Positions 19,674-56,622 of a stretch of DNA of 64,000 bases are shown one piece after another (positions within the stretch are counted from its first letter, which is position 1; every line of letters starts with the position of its first letter). Both the position numbers and the translations under genes were made by a program. The notes beneath the pieces are model-generated. The model searched no databases and was not told the DNA's origin. It worked only from the letters and a program-made list of their open reading frames with translations. Location of the stretch: sequence record OR532817.1; one strand, given 5' to 3'.

Positions 19674-20072
19674 ATGTTTACTATCACTTCTCGCCAGGAT
19701 GTTCTGTACGTTGCTAAAACTTTTGGTCTGGAAGCACTCGATCATATCATTCGCAACAGTACAATGAATGCGGATGCAAATGGGATTATCATTGATACTC
19801 GGGCATGGGCCGCCAATGAAGTCATTGCCATCGAGCATGTTAACGATGGTAACAATGTCTATGAAGTGGATGCATGTTTCAATGCTGTTAATGTAGCAGG
19901 TATGTATATCACTGGTATTGATGATATCACTATCATCCGCTCCGGTATGGGTAACTTCTCCATGCCTTTACGTTCAGCAATGGAAAGAAAAGAGATCAGT
20001 ACAGAACAATGTGCAAATATAATCAATGAGATTACCGCACGTAATGAAGCTGCTGCTATCCTTTACCCGTAG
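19674..20072 (+). CDS. Hypothetical protein
   Basis: Promoter, hairpin, RBS TAGGAG. Confidence 0.8.
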   Translation: MFTITSRQDVLYVAKTFGLEALDHIIRNSTMNADANGIIIDTRAWAANEVIAIEHVNDGNNVYEVDACFNAVNVAGMYITGIDDITIIRSGMGNFSMPLRSAMERKEISTEQCANIINEITARNEAAAILYP

Positions 20073-39973: not shown

Positions 39974-40495
39974 ATGAAATCAATTTATACTGAAAGTATT
40001 AAAATCATTAATGACATTGATGATTTCTTTAAATATGTAAATTCAAATTCTTATTATGCACTTCATAATTTGAATATACTAATTTTTGATCATCCAGGTT
40101 CTGTTATTTCTGCATTTGAACCTAAAAATTTTTATCAAATCTGTTTAATTAGAGATAATGTCCAGGAATCAATTTTTAAGGTATCATTGAATACGAGATA
40201 TGAATACTGGAACGAATCAAAAATGTTCTATTTTGACGCGAGCAGAAATGAATTTTCAATATGTGAAAAAACAAAAATCCAAAATACTGTTGATATTTTG
40301 GAATATGATAACAATATAGAAGAGTTAGCATTCCAGTACAGTACTGAAGTACAACTGGAATTTGTTCCTGTTTGTGTATTGGCTTCGTACTTAAAGAAGA
40401 ATCACGACCCGAAATACCCATTATTTAAACTGATACTCAACGATGTTGATTTTTTATTAAAACGATTCAAGGAAATAGAAGACTATGATTGGTAA
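39974..40495 (+). CDS. Family A protein
   Basis: IEELAFQYSTEV. Confidence 0.8.
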   Translation: MKSIYTESIKIINDIDDFFKYVNSNSYYALHNLNILIFDHPGSVISAFEPKNFYQICLIRDNVQESIFKVSLNTRYEYWNESKMFYFDASRNEFSICEKTKIQNTVDILEYDNNIEELAFQYSTEVQLEFVPVCVLASYLKKNHDPKYPLFKLILNDVDFLLKRFKEIEDYDW

Positions 40496-54408: not shown

Positions 54409-55269
54409 ATGAAATTATATTTTTTATTTTCTTTTGCTGAAGATATGTATGGATTTGCAGAAGATGCAGAAAGTGATGGAATCTCATCACATACCAGGCA
54501 TCAAAAACATCCACATGAGTTTTATAATAATTTATTCATGTTTATGCAATATAAAATTTTCTCATCTGAATTTGATAATTTAGATCACCCATGGGAATTA
54601 CCTTTAATTGATATTCCAGACGAATACGTATTTCAGTTCATGTTAATGGGTCTGGAAGACTATGACTTGGTTGTTTATAACTACAGAACTAAACGCATTA
54701 TGCTTGGAACTCACGATAGTTCCATTGTATATGTTTCAAGTACTAATGAGGAGTTAGCGTCTGATGAAGGTAATTATAGAAAATCTTATGGTTATATAGA
54801 AAATGATAATGATTTTATTTTAGATTTTCGTGTATCAGAAGAAGAAAGAAGAAAAAGAGAAACTTATCAAGTGGAGTTAAAATCAGATAATGGTTATAAT
54901 GAAATTTTGGAAGTACTTAAACCATACTACCTTGATATTGTTTATAAGAAATATAAACGCCTGTTAAATCATCTTAGCGAAAAAGAACCAATTGGTTTTG
55001 AAACCAATTCATTACGTAATAGCATCATATTTCCACCTAGAGTAATGAAATATGGTGAAGTTTCTAAACACAAGATGAAACTATATCCAGATGATATTGA
55101 AGTTCTATATCATTCGTGGTTGAATAATGATGAACTATATGTAGAAAATAAAAAGTTAATGCGTATAAGTAATAATGATGATAGATTGCTACAAGCGTGG
55201 TATAATGATTCATATTCTGCATTTACTGACAGTAATTCTGAGTATTGGAAGAACACAGGACAAAACTAA
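54409..55269 (+). CDS. Hypothetical protein with internal Family A-like motif
   Basis: PDEYVFQFML. Confidence 0.75.
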   Translation: MKLYFLFSFAEDMYGFAEDAESDGISSHTRHQKHPHEFYNNLFMFMQYKIFSSEFDNLDHPWELPLIDIPDEYVFQFMLMGLEDYDLVVYNYRTKRIMLGTHDSSIVYVSSTNEELASDEGNYRKSYGYIENDNDFILDFRVSEEERRKRETYQVELKSDNGYNEILEVLKPYYLDIVYKKYKRLLNHLSEKEPIGFETNSLRNSIIFPPRVMKYGEVSKHKMKLYPDDIEVLYHSWLNNDELYVENKKLMRISNNDDRLLQAWYNDSYSAFTDSNSEYWKNTGQN

Positions 55270-55271
55270 AC

Positions 55272-55299
55272 CAAGGACGGCGTAAAACCCGTCCTTTTT
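55272..55299 (+). terminator. Intrinsic terminator
   Basis: AAGGACGG-CGTAAAAC-CCGTCCTT-TTTT. Confidence 0.85.
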
Positions 55300-55349
55300 T
55301 AATACATAAATATCTGAACGAAAAATAGATTTAAGATATAATGTTTATA

Positions 55350-55785
55350 ATTACAAGGATGTTGGATGCATAGGATGTGCATACACTAAAAACCTGATCC
55401 ACTCGAAACAAGTAGAGGGCAGATGAGTATACCAACAATACGCCGTGTAGAGGATACCCGTTTAGGCGAGTCGACACGTTAAAGGGCAAAGGTAGCACGA
55501 TTGCCTCAATCTCTCTGGAGATTGATAGGACGCGAATCCAGTTAAGTCTGGACATTAAGTGTAAAAGGGAGATTATTTTCTTTTAGATATTTTGGAAATA
55601 ATCACAGTATTGAATTGCTTGAATAGTTCGGTACTGAAGTGCAAGTATGTTTAAACTTGTGACCGTTGCATGTGACTGCGATAAGGGGAAACCGGGCAAC
55701 CCGCCTCTGCCTAATAAATTTAATTTATTAGAATTCGCAATTCAAGGAATTTCGACAGCTACGAGCTTCAAGGCTTAGCTTTTTT
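55350..55785 (+). ncRNA. Candidate large structured non-coding RNA
   Basis: TATAAT at 55337; GC-richer than flanks; no + strand ORF; many stems (see findings); U-tract near 55780. Confidence 0.55.
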
Positions 55786-55794
55786 ATTTCTCTT

Positions 55795-55960
55795 CCCCTC
55801 CCTGTGGGGGGATGAAAATATCTCGTGCAAACGCCTTCAAGTATTGAAATTCACGAAGTGAATTGAAATTACTTGTTCTGTAGTCGAACGACAGTGAGAC
55901 GTGAGAACAAGTAATTTCTGCATGTATCAACGAAGTGCAAACGGAGTTGATACATAGCAC
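55795..55960. repeat. Serial hairpin array
   Basis: AATTCAC-GAA-GTGAATT; AAATTACTTGTTCT...AGAACAAGTAATTT; TGTATCAAC-GAAGTGCAAACGGA-GTTGATACA. Confidence 0.65.
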
Positions 55961-56010
55961 TTTAAAACATTATTGAATTCAATAATTAATATTATTATGG
56001 TTTTAAAGAA

Positions 56011-56622
56011 ATGAATTTAGAAGAACAGAAAAAAATCGCTTCAAGAAAAAAAAAGAAAGGAATTGATATTAAGTACTTGGACAAGGAATTTCAAATAATT
56101 CATAATCCAAATAGTTCTTTTTGTGGTTACAGGATACGAACAGAACAAAATACTTTATCGAATATAAGTGAGTATGAAAATGGTACTGAAATAGGAATTA
56201 TTAACTTCAGACCAACTCAAACACCAACAATACTCGGAGCTAGATATAAACAATATTTTGAAGAGAGATATGCCAATGGAAACATTTATCTTCATTATAC
56301 ATTTTATAAAAGCGTACTAATTGGTGAATACAAGAAATATGATTCAGATGGGAATTTAACACTAAGAGAATTCTATGATGGAAATGGTGTTTGTACTGAA
56401 GAAATAAAAGAATTCATTGGTTTTAATGGAACAAATGAAGAATTTATTCATTACGAATTTAAAGAAGATGAAGAATTTAATATATTAATGCGATATGGTT
56501 CTCACTTCAAATTAATAAAAGAAATAAAGTTTAAAACAGAATATTTTAATTACGTATATGAAAATTGCCTCAAACGTGGCTATATACGCAATGATTTAAA
56601 TAAAAAGAAATACAAACACTGA
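56011..56622 (+). CDS. MORN-variant/YwqK-like repeat protein
   Basis: YANGNIYLHYTFYKSVLIGEYKKYDSDGNL..REFY.GNG. Confidence 0.6.
   Translation: MNLEEQKKIASRKKKKGIDIKYLDKEFQIIHNPNSSFCGYRIRTEQNTLSNISEYENGTEIGIINFRPTQTPTILGARYKQYFEERYANGNIYLHYTFYKSVLIGEYKKYDSDGNLTLREFYDGNGVCTEEIKEFIGFNGTNEEFIHYEFKEDEEFNILMRYGSHFKLIKEIKFKTEYFNYVYENCLKRGYIRNDLNKKKYKH

Follow-up and report, generated by a model that had tools for sequence, protein, structure and literature searches.

In the RaK2-like Klebsiella jumbo phage of sequence record OR532817.1, of which a stretch of 64,000 nt (the window) was analysed, the region downstream of position 55,350 is, as judged from the comparison of its homologues, an uncatalogued RNA gene of about 450-600 nt, which is intricately folded and non-coding, rather than a leader, a coding stretch or a DNA site. 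Compensatory changes maintain about 20 helices and two pseudoknots, and about 90 nucleotides, mainly in junctions and loops, are invariant. Single-sequence folding had only a slight edge over shuffles (z = -2.0), so the proof was taken from the homologue comparison. The RNA was assigned to the + strand because G.U pairs are abundant.

Locus and coding potential

The RNA gene is located in a 741-nt gap without conserved ORF (55270-56010). The upstream 286-aa ORF ends at 55269 and is followed by its intrinsic terminator (+ strand, 55273-55302; 8-bp stem with 5 G-C pairs at 55273-55296, plus T-run), which forms the 5′ boundary of the locus. This terminator had been recognised in an earlier note on the DNA, as had the GC content, which is 0.385-0.425 over 55300-55900 vs 0.26-0.33 in the flanks. 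By nhmmer the homologous unit comprised 55332-55937. Only one copy was found inside the 64 kb, the second paralog of the same phage being located outside the window; a weak blastn match at 40292-40354 lay inside an ORF and was discarded as chance. ARAGORN revealed no tRNA or tmRNA in the 64-kb window.

Three small ORFs were found at the locus, of 74 aa (minus strand, 55331-55555), 43 aa (the only one on the + strand) and 38 aa, and small hypothetical proteins are annotated on it in K64-1 and Muenster. The locus might thus encode the minus-strand 74-aa or the + strand 43-aa protein, with the pairings being incidental. This reading is already refuted by the sequence comparison: in homologues each of the three frames is shifted or interrupted, the 74-aa and 43-aa frames are broken even in an 80%-identical paralog, the substitutions in helices are compensatory with many G.U pairs, and no Pfam match was found for the small ORFs. 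The 74-aa ORF, which the earlier note had considered as a possible conserved protein, is frameshifted or stopped in every homologue; the note had stated that the + strand has no ORF there. Database entries that show small hypothetical proteins where this RNA gene lies need correction.

Promoter and 5′ part

A sigma-70-type promoter was found on the + strand at 55314-55342, composed of a -35-like CTGAAC (55314-19), a 17-nt spacer and the -10 sequence TATAAT (55337-42), and from its position transcription would start at about 55349-55351. The TATAAT, noticed before from the window copy, is conserved in 40 members, with T, T and A invariant and the other positions nearly so. Most family members contain the extended form TGnTATAAT. 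The promoter of the window copy is weaker than the family consensus, and it was missed by a simple promoter scan because it has no TG and a poor -35.

The first conserved pairing is pseudoknot 1, of which the 5′ strand UGUUGG (+ strand, 55360-55365) pairs with the hairpin loop CCAACA (55432-55437). At the homologous positions other members contain CUGAUUGA/UCAAUCAG, CUGAAUGA/UCAUUCAG, CUGCUUGG/UCAAGCAG, CUGACUGG/CCAGUCAG, GUGUGG/CCACAC, ACAACGG/CCGUUGU and CUGUUGAAU/GUUCAACAG. The per-sequence shuffle test for this pseudoknot was weak, and its support comes from covariation at fixed positions. The next feature is a variable hairpin, AUGCA/UGCAU here (+ strand, 55366-55382); all members have a hairpin at this place, with different stem sequences.

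The 5′ domain (+ strand, 55388-55482) was defined by covariance model R2, built on alignment A5 of 53 sequences. It comprises a helix at 55394-55404/55415-55422, whose loop GAAA(n)GUA is conserved, the invariant GAUGAG, a hairpin at 55427-29/55439-41 whose loop is the pseudoknot 1 partner, and the helix CGUGU/ACACG at 55444-48/55474-78. In this domain 99.3% of cells were paired vs 30-42% in slid controls, 13 of the 18 pairs showed double-sided changes, and none of 500 shuffles reached the observed values.

Middle and core domains

The middle domain (+ strand, 55483-55570) was delineated through RNAalifold on alignment A1 and through paralog comparison. It contains the hairpins GGCAA/UUGCC (55485-89/55501-05) and UCCAG/CUGGA (55537-41/55548-52), where the paralog type of the same genome shows UCUGG/CCAGA and CAAGC/GCUUG, together with the invariant strings GAUAG and, at 55565-70, AAGGGA. 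A further hairpin, at 55506-13/55518-25, is specific to RaK2, and the equivalent hairpin of other members carries compensatory changes (RNAalifold, A1).

The core domain (+ strand, 55571-55744) was defined by covariance model R1, built on alignment A3 of 61 sequences. It starts with a helix at 55571-75/55599-603 and a 13-bp hairpin (55605-17/55624-36); the loop of the latter, at 55620-24, pairs with 55740-44 to give pseudoknot 2. A hairpin at 55641-44/55657-60 and the invariant GACCGUUGCA (55661-70) follow. The remaining part is composed of the helices UGCGA/UCGCA (55677-81/55735-39) and AGGGG/CCUCU (55684-88/55704-08), the invariant GGGCAACCCGC hairpin (55693-703) and an A/U hairpin (55711-31). 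Here 98.6% of cells were paired vs 42-52% in slid controls, changes on both sides were found in 19 of 21 pairs, and the covariation score was 0.657 vs at most 0.11; 0 of 500 shuffles matched the observed values. Pseudoknot 2 is supported by five successive column pairs, all of them 100% canonical and each showing 6-17 double changes. The window copy is the lowest-scoring member against both models.

With covariation far above slid controls in the core and the 5′ domain, the earlier proposal of a highly structured non-coding RNA is well supported. Nine of the eleven pairings that it listed show compensatory changes, namely CGTGT/ACACG, CAGTA/TACTG (in the 13-bp hairpin), CAAGT/ACTTG, GATTATTT/AAATAATC, GGCAA/TTGCC, TCAATCTC/GAGATTGA, TCCAG/CTGGA, ATGCA/TGCAT and TGTTGG/CCAACA. 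CGGG/CCCG is uninformative because it is invariant. The long-range GGCAGA (55418)/TCTGCC (55706) has to be abandoned, since each of its strands belongs to another covarying helix: GGCAG forms a local helix with CUG..CC (55394-55404), and the partner of CCUCU is AGGGG (55684-55688).

3′ part of the unit

The short form of the RNA would end at 55754-55785 (+ strand), with a local hairpin that ends in motif M1 (CUUCAAG, 55765-71) and a terminator-like hairpin AGCUA/UAGCU (55757-61/55776-80) with a U-run (55780-85) behind it. A putative terminator hairpin after the core was found in 30 of 40 representatives, followed by a U-run in most of them; the other ten lack it and continue directly into the next element. 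Reading the window copy directly, we found that the M1 hairpin and the terminator stem share 55757-59 and are therefore mutually exclusive there. In most members the two do not overlap.

A second conserved element (+ strand, 55790-55841) is composed of CUUC, a C/G hairpin (55797-802/55806-811), the conserved AUGAAAAU, CAAA and motif M2 (CUUCAAG, 55835-41), which is identical to M1. Among 40 members G478-G482, the next T, AAA and CxxCA are all invariant, and six consecutive G with an A-rich tract behind them are conserved at 55806-55819. C-to-U changes in the 5′ arm of the C/G hairpin give U.G pairs, which fits the + strand. A third covariance model, for this element, captured only a 5-bp C/G hairpin. 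RNAalifold also suggested that GACCGUUG pairs over a long distance with the region of M1; this pairing is doubtful, being invariant, broken in the window copy and in competition with a local hairpin.

The second element could be read as an RNA anti-CRISPR carried on a larger RNA and mimicking a solitary CRISPR repeat, which we regard as highly improbable. CUUCCCC-(loop)-GGGGGGAUGAAA is loosely like the E. coli type I-E repeat (MG1655), with local alignment scores of 12-20 vs about 9.7 for shuffles, but the similarity is mostly that of a C-run/G-run hairpin. No CRISPR-DR family of Rfam matched on the + strand, the sole match being DR37 on the minus strand with E = 0.86, and the 450-nt core would be left unexplained. 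The element is presumably conserved to the same degree in phages of hosts with other CRISPR types.

M1 and M2 change in parallel in four lineages, the forms CGUCA, CUUCA and CGACA occurring in different lineages, and no internal complement that changes along with them and no internal guide complementary to them was found. We weighed a new large ribozyme, in which the junction nucleotides would form the active site and M1 and M2 would be matching processing sites, or the substrate would be a cellular one. The invariant positions, mostly in joining regions, and the two pseudoknots are consistent with it, the invariant GACCGUUGCA and GGGCAACCCGC could pair together (GUUGC/GCAAC), and two identical motifs changing together are expected for one guide or active site. 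On the other side, no Rfam ribozyme model matched, flanking exons are absent, and the missing guide also speaks against it, so that we consider a ribozyme unlikely. Hammerhead-like strings (CUGA, GAUGAG and GAAA) are present but misfit the core, and a hammerhead was ruled out because the required A varies A/U in GAUGAG, GAAA is just about 12 nt away and there is no room for the stems; the other small self-cleaving ribozymes were without Rfam match as well.

The downstream hairpin array (+ strand, 55848-55956) is part of the RNA unit, as nhmmer homology extends to 55937. It includes AAUUCAC/GUGAAUU (55848-64), and a long hairpin (55865-78/55905-18) with the conserved GAACGAnAGUGA (55887-97) as its loop; a further hairpin lies at 55922-31/55947-56. 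According to RNAalifold, every pair of the hairpins 55882-89/55894-901 and 55924-28/55932-36 shows compensatory changes, and jumbo phages and bacterial islands share the conserved loop motif CGAACGnAGUGAG. The extent of 55337-55785 given in the earlier note is too short; the unit covers about 600 nt, from about 55350 to 55940, and includes the C/G hairpin as well as the array, which the note had taken as its downstream border.

Distribution and gene neighbourhood

Homologous units were found in jumbo phages of Alcyoneus-, Asterius-, Eneladus- and Mimasvirus with 2-4 dispersed copies per genome, two of them in this phage. Each phage copy has its own promoter, the neighbours are unrelated between copies, and no consistent protein neighbour was found among them. 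The unit also exists as a single copy in small integrative islands of Enterobacteriaceae, directly downstream of an integrase gene of the serine or tyrosine type and followed by a convergent cI-like repressor gene, leaving no downstream gene for cis regulation. A membrane protein encoded after the RNA in islands was considered as a partner and rejected, since it has no phage homologue and no family or solved-structure match. tRNA genes were near only 2 of 36 family loci.

If the RNA acted in cis, as a leader or a riboswitch-like sensor, ligand binding by the core would control the read-through of the terminator-like hairpin into downstream genes. The phage layout of structured core, hairpin with U-run and same-strand gene would suit this, and so would the mutually exclusive hairpins of the window copy. 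Downstream of the unit, on the same strand, an ADP-ribosylglycohydrolase gene starts at a distance between 23-27 nt and about 1 kb in 14 of 82 loci; in one orthologous paralog of several genera it begins 23-27 nt past the unit. The downstream genes, however, vary by copy, both flanking genes in phage 121Q are oriented opposite to the RNA, and the next gene of the islands is convergent, so a constant leader position was rejected. The hairpin is missing in a quarter of members, the region behind it is itself conserved and structured, and most members lack the overlap of M1 hairpin and terminator. We therefore hold a general leader role to be very unlikely; the paralog linked to ADP-ribosylglycohydrolase may act as a leader, because there the gene follows on the same strand.

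The dispersed copies might also suggest a replication-origin module, in which a persistent R-loop would prime the leading strand, the copies would serve as origins and the island copy would be replicated by a helper phage. Transcript-primed replication is known from T4 oriF/oriG, T4 having several such origins, and from ColE1 RNA II, and the jumbo phages presumably carry T4-like replication genes. A strong host-type promoter on each of the 2-4 copies would agree with this, the six-G run with its A-rich tract (55806-55819) could stabilise an RNA:DNA hybrid, and the islands bear the element near one end and contain no recognisable replication genes. Nevertheless, the fold is more elaborate and conserved than any known primer RNA requires, a terminator-like hairpin precedes the G-run in 30 of 40 members, and the position between integrase and repressor is atypical. 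No GC-skew inflection, no iterons and no obvious conserved A/T-rich unwinding element were found at the locus. An origin is in our view quite unlikely.

Proposed role

The preferred reading, to which we give a probability of roughly 0.55, is that of a self-contained, trans-acting, ornate non-coding RNA gene of mobile elements, possibly a decoy or scaffold; the decoy or scaffold part is suggested by exclusion and analogy. The host RNA polymerase would transcribe the RNA early from about 55350, using the sigma-70 promoter. Termination at the U-run near 55785 would give a short form of about 435 nt, and read-through to about 55940-55990 a longer one of about 600 nt. Once folded, the RNA would benefit the mobile element in trans; we favour a mechanism in which it binds a host factor and sequesters or re-purposes it, and the RNA might be multimeric. 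M1 and M2 could together provide two contact sites for a partner that is dimeric or has two sites.

More speculatively, and only as a doubtful possibility, the family might represent a new functional class of large RNA, a ribozyme or RNA machine, in which M1 and M2 would be programmable sites recognising a nucleic-acid target with two sites or a dimeric protein. Both the lytic jumbo phages and the enterobacterial islands with an integrase might use it to manipulate the cell or each other, for example by an island copying the RNA of its helper phage.

Significance

Large and intricately folded RNAs of bacteria and phages without assigned function are rare, the examples being OLE, GOLLD, ROOL, HEARO and raiA, and we know of none among these that comes from phages of easily handled enterobacteria. 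The statistical support for the present family equals that of any of them. The family exists in phages plating on laboratory E. coli, K-12 included (e.g. phage Sharanji), which makes genetics, pull-downs, structure probing and cryo-EM feasible. Besides Sharanji, the Asteriusvirus carriers include 121Q and PBECO4. The same RNA is multi-copy in lytic 350-kb phages and is located beside integrases in 10-kb chromosomal islands, which suggests that its function is portable and of use to mobile elements of very different kinds. Once discovered, this function would add a new RNA-based mechanism to the conflict between phage and host or between elements.

Comparison with known RNA classes

Through cmscan against Rfam 15, the check named in the earlier note, nothing was detected at gathering thresholds on the whole window, on the bacterial loci or on 11 other members. 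At E<10 only noise was found on 55200-56050 and on the 11 members, with no recurrent weak match and with neither GOLLD nor ROOL appearing. Because Rfam 15 gave no match, the RNA is not GOLLD, ROOL, tmRNA, RNase P or an intron, which agrees with the earlier view on tmRNA, RNase P and group I/II introns. For tmRNA, ARAGORN was negative, the sole Rfam match was mt-tmRNA at chance level (E = 6.5), and the candidate short frames after the C/G hairpin are broken by 1-nt indels, as is the frame of a short peptide after GGGGGGAUG. For RNase P RNA, look-alike strings, compared with the motifs of E. coli M1 RNA, were non-collinear, and 'GAGAG' is a strand of a covarying helix and not a conserved loop. 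For group I/II introns, there are no flanking exons, and the unit, with its own promoter, lies between complete genes that differ by copy. Guide RNAs of neighbouring enzymes (omega RNA/HEARO, retron or DRT ncRNAs, bridge RNA) were rejected, as the phage copies have no adjacent nuclease, reverse transcriptase or recombinase gene and the integrase upstream of the island copies varies between a serine and a tyrosine type. In the literature on jumbo-phage ncRNAs, on GOLLD/ROOL follow-ups and on the conserved strings, we found no description of this RNA.

ROOL and GOLLD are large ornate ncRNAs from phages and prophages of Firmicutes and from lake metagenomes, and their loci are often close to tRNA genes. 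The present family resembles them in the 500-800-nt size class, in its many covarying helices and pseudoknots, in being carried by phages or prophages, in having its own promoter and in lacking an obligatory protein partner gene. It differs in showing no sequence or structure homology to them (the Rfam models are silent), in its enterobacterial hosts with 2-4 paralogs per genome, and in being adjacent to integrases in the islands without a tRNA-gene neighbourhood. The likeness to GOLLD and ROOL that the earlier note suggested is therefore one of kind and not of family membership.

By analogy with these classes, the RNA might form an RNA-only higher-order assembly, a homo-oligomeric scaffold or cage whose function is its architecture. 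A cryo-EM preprint describes RNA-only multimers of GOLLD and ROOL (bioRxiv 10.1101/2024.12.08.627333). The similar size class and complexity, the carriage by mobile elements, the own promoter and the lack of a protein partner gene favour such an assembly; the absence of a match to ROOL or GOLLD and of a tRNA-gene association argues against it, and a conserved self-complementary loop, the mark of a kissing dimer, was not found. We consider such an assembly unlikely.

Compared with ColE1 RNA II and the T4 oriF/oriG transcripts, the RNA is likewise a promoter-driven, folded, non-coding unit, its G-run could anchor an RNA:DNA hybrid, and several copies per T4-like genome would be consistent with multiple origins. 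However, its fold is much larger and more conserved, the terminator-like hairpin lies before the G-run in most members, and neither an unwinding element nor iterons nor a skew signal was detected. With the RNA anti-CRISPRs, which are solitary CRISPR-repeat units, the family shares a short C/G hairpin, flanked by conserved bases, in a phage non-coding region, but the similarity is weak, no CRISPR-DR family matched, and the hairpin is embedded in a conserved structured RNA of 600 nt.

The Pseudomonas jumbo phage PA5oct, said to be distantly related to the RaK2/121Q group, produces ncRNA002, a 451-nt lncRNA that makes up about 5% of phage reads in early and middle samples (PMC7318152). Homology to it was rejected, the conserved blocks being absent by both covariance models and by inspection. 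The two are alike in comprising about 450 nt in an ORF-free gap of a jumbo phage, and the PA5oct RNA shows that long ncRNAs are indeed produced in abundance by phages of this kind.

Locus and coding potential

The 741-nt gap at 55270-56010 carries one member of an uncatalogued family of large ornate noncoding RNA genes of enterobacterial mobile elements, which belongs to no known RNA family. The structured RNA proposed at 55337-55785 in the earlier note is real and was read essentially right; it extends further and is more widely distributed than that reader could see, and the profile match in the window runs over 55332-55937.

The gap matches Klebsiella phage RCIP0023 at 100% identity; for RaK2, K64-1 and Muenster (genus Alcyoneusvirus, 346-358 kb) the figure is 98-99%. 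In these records the gap is either unannotated or filled with small hypothetical ORFs. A clean intrinsic terminator (55273-55296) follows the upstream 286-aa gene, which ends at 55269; a TATAAT is present at 55337-55342, and GC content is 0.385-0.425 across the gap versus 0.26-0.33 on either side. The terminator, the TATAAT and the higher GC content had been noticed earlier. On the larger scale, GC content is about 0.36 over 1-20 kb and drops around window position 20000 to about 0.27-0.29 over 20-64 kb, suggesting a border of genome modules differing in composition.

The only ORF of the gap on the + strand encodes 43 aa, and those on the minus strand 74 and 38 aa. The 74-aa ORF, which the earlier note had named as evidence against an RNA should it prove to be a conserved protein, is frameshifted and also has a stop in the 80% identical paralog, and has one to five stops in more distant members, in which the 43-aa and 38-aa ORFs were no better kept. 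Pfam search of the gap ORFs gave no match. Small hypothetical proteins are annotated over the RNA gene in public records (K64-1 gp575-578 and Muenster gp135; 55331-55555 on the minus strand, 55647-55778 on the + strand, and equivalents in NC_027399 and MT708547); these ORFs show no conservation and have probably been annotated in error.

Distribution in jumbo phages

Through distant blastn, we found related gaps in other RaK2-like jumbo phages, namely Asteriusvirus (121Q, PBECO4 and many coliphages), Eneladusvirus (Yersinia phage fHe-Yen9-04), Mimasvirus (Pectobacterium phage CBB and Xanthomonas phage XbC2), Klebsiella phage fENko-Kae01, and phages of Salmonella, Erwinia, Serratia and Cronobacter; the matched site in each was an unannotated gap of 690-840 nt. 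Flanking genes vary between phages, and in 121Q an endonuclease VII gene lies on one side and a hypothetical gene beside a baseplate hub gene on the other, both on the opposite strand. Profile search over all fetched sequences gave 81 hits. According to pattern scans of IMG/VR, RaK2 and 121Q have two copies each, one 360-kb UViG has three and one 366-kb UViG has four, with the copies widely separated within a genome.

RaK2-type phages contain the window-type copy and a paralog about 80% identical (fetched loci L003, L016 and L066), which sits outside the window; inside it the covariance model detects one copy. A stretch at 40292-40354, with weak blastn similarity (75% over 63 nt) to 55586-55644, was rejected as a chance match; it falls within an ORF (39974-40495) and was missed by both the family profile and the covariance model.

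In other jumbo phages, outside the window, an ADP-ribosylglycohydrolase gene is located 3' of one orthologous RNA paralog on the same strand (fetched loci L007:2109-3035, L020, L010, L032, L018, L021, L137, L011 and L014), with its start between 23-27 nt and about 1 kb beyond the RNA. These enzymes are only 55-85% identical across phages, and at L100 and L176, two bacterial or metagenomic loci, related ones occur at a distance of 4-5 kb from the RNA.

Distribution in bacterial islands

Pattern scans also revealed full-length units in chromosomes of Enterobacter, Citrobacter, Serratia, Silvania, Buttiauxella and other Enterobacteriaceae, including two of the 5426 complete E. coli genomes. They sit in small integrative islands, in which a large serine or a tyrosine integrase is followed by the RNA on the same strand and then by a convergent cI-like S24 repressor, a winged-helix regulator, a 286-aa membrane protein, an LprI-like protein and a resolvase. 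As rivals to the main reading given below, the RNA might be a leader for the downstream gene, a reading limited to one paralog lineage and set against this convergent gene order in islands; a transcript-primed replication origin, copied by islands, is another rival.

The E. coli island (LR-29-1 chromosome, L263:4997-15341) is about 9 kb and adjoins the SRP RNA gene ffs. Besides the RNA it contains a tyrosine integrase disrupted by IS3, DUF4326, DUF488 and dual-OB proteins, and a small recombinase. No phage structural genes were found in it, and it could be a satellite or defence island. A more distant metagenomic group retains the promoter, 13-bp hairpin, core and C/G hairpin, with a different 5' domain.

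Conserved anatomy

Every copy opens with a -10 hexamer, usually as extended TGnTATAAT, and 17 nt upstream of it stands a -35-like TGGGACA or TGAAC. Downstream come conserved blocks with variable hairpins between them: AAAACCUGAUCC ... CGAAAA(n)GUAG ... CAGAUGAG; ACGGCAAUGCGGCAC, reduced in RaK2-type copies; GAUAGACAUAUAAGG; UAAGGGAG; the invariant GACCGUUGCA and GGGCAACCCGC; AAAUUC; and CAGCGUCAA, which is motif M1. A hairpin stands after the M1 block in 30 of the 40 representatives, with a U-run behind it in most. Further 3', all members contain CUUC, a C/G hairpin, GGGGGGAUGAAA, CAAAnCnCGUCAA (motif M2) and UGAAUUGA, and then hairpins with a loop reading CGAACGnAGUGAG. Because these elements past M1 are conserved in all members, the hairpin array, previously taken as the downstream boundary, is part of the same RNA unit. 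Across 40 sequences with a mean column identity of 49%, about 90 positions do not vary.

M1 (55765-55771) and M2 (55835-55841) are identical 7-nt motifs, CUUCAAG in the window and CGUCAAG in most relatives, and they vary together across four lineages: most members have CGUCA, RaK2-type copies CUUCA, one Serratia island CGACA (its near relative retains CGUCA) and the distant metagenomic group CGAAG. A matching complementary change was sought within the RNA and not found, which suggests that the two motifs share an outside partner or pair alternatively.

Covariation and fold

Single-sequence folding gave only a modest excess over shuffles (z = -2.0 for the + strand and -2.5 for the minus strand), and therefore the sequence alone could not settle the question. 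RNAalifold on a 40-sequence alignment predicted about 22 helices, most with compensatory changes. For two domains, all members were then realigned to newly built covariance models, and pairs were counted in these alignments and in controls. The core domain (55598-55741, 61 sequences) showed standard pairs in 98.6% of cells, compared with 42-52% when partners were slid by 1-3 columns; both sides changed in 19 of 21 pairs, the covariation score was 0.657 (controls ≤0.11), and none of 500 shuffles attained any observed measure. The 5' domain (55388-55482, 53 sequences) was 99.3% paired versus 30-42% in controls, with both sides changed in 13 of 18 pairs and a score of 0.404 (controls ≤0.07). G.U and U.G pairs are frequent (UG at one pair in 52 of 61 sequences); read from the opposite strand they would be A.C mismatches, which identifies the + strand as the folded molecule.

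Two long-range pairings covary as well. In pseudoknot 1 the 5' leader (55360-55365) pairs with a loop (55432-55437), with at least nine distinct complementary sequence pairs at identical positions; in pseudoknot 2 the apical loop of the 13-bp hairpin (55620-55624) pairs with 55740-55744, as UCGAA/UUCGA, UUGUAUAG/CUAUACAA or UUCAUGU/ACAUGAA. RaK2-type paralogs show compensatory differences (AGGGG/CCUCU versus GGACG/CGUUC; UCCAG/CUGGA versus UCUGG/CCAGA) despite almost identical 3' halves. Nine pairings listed earlier are backed by covariation and CGGG/CCCG is invariant, whereas long-range GGCAGA/TCTGCC lacks support, since each strand is used in another covarying helix.

Possible role and comparison with known RNAs

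The conserved promoter, selected + strand folding, independence of neighbours, multiple paralogs and convergent next gene in islands together mark this as a self-contained gene whose product is a structured RNA acting in trans. Judging from sequence, host polymerase would transcribe it early in infection and stop at the U-run with partial read-through. We favour, by exclusion, a decoy or scaffold engaging a cellular factor, because no enzyme-like relative, cis target or partner gene is evident; a new ribozyme and an RNA-only assembly are the rivals here. The RNA is an attractive target, given its distribution, its copy number and hosts that lend themselves to experiments.

Rfam 15 gave no match at gathering thresholds over the whole window; at E<10 the locus had only chance-level hits, no weak hit recurred across 11 members, and nothing was found at the RNA element in nine bacterial loci. 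ARAGORN found neither tRNA nor tmRNA. Strings resembling RNase P and a hammerhead were examined and did not hold up. The conserved C/G hairpin with its flanks (55790-55819, CUUCCCC...GGGGGGAUGAAA) shows a loose likeness to type I-E CRISPR repeats; its alignment to the MG1655 repeat was only weakly above shuffles, and CRISPR-DR models did not match its + strand.

Literature searches revealed no description of this RNA. The related Pseudomonas jumbo phage PA5oct is reported to produce an abundant, highly expressed 451-nt lncRNA, ncRNA002 (PMC7318152); this molecule (L264:952-1402) is different from and unrelated to the family in the window, and seems to be one more unclassified long ncRNA of phage origin. 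In kind, as a large structured ncRNA of unknown function on mobile elements, the RNA in the window has precedents.
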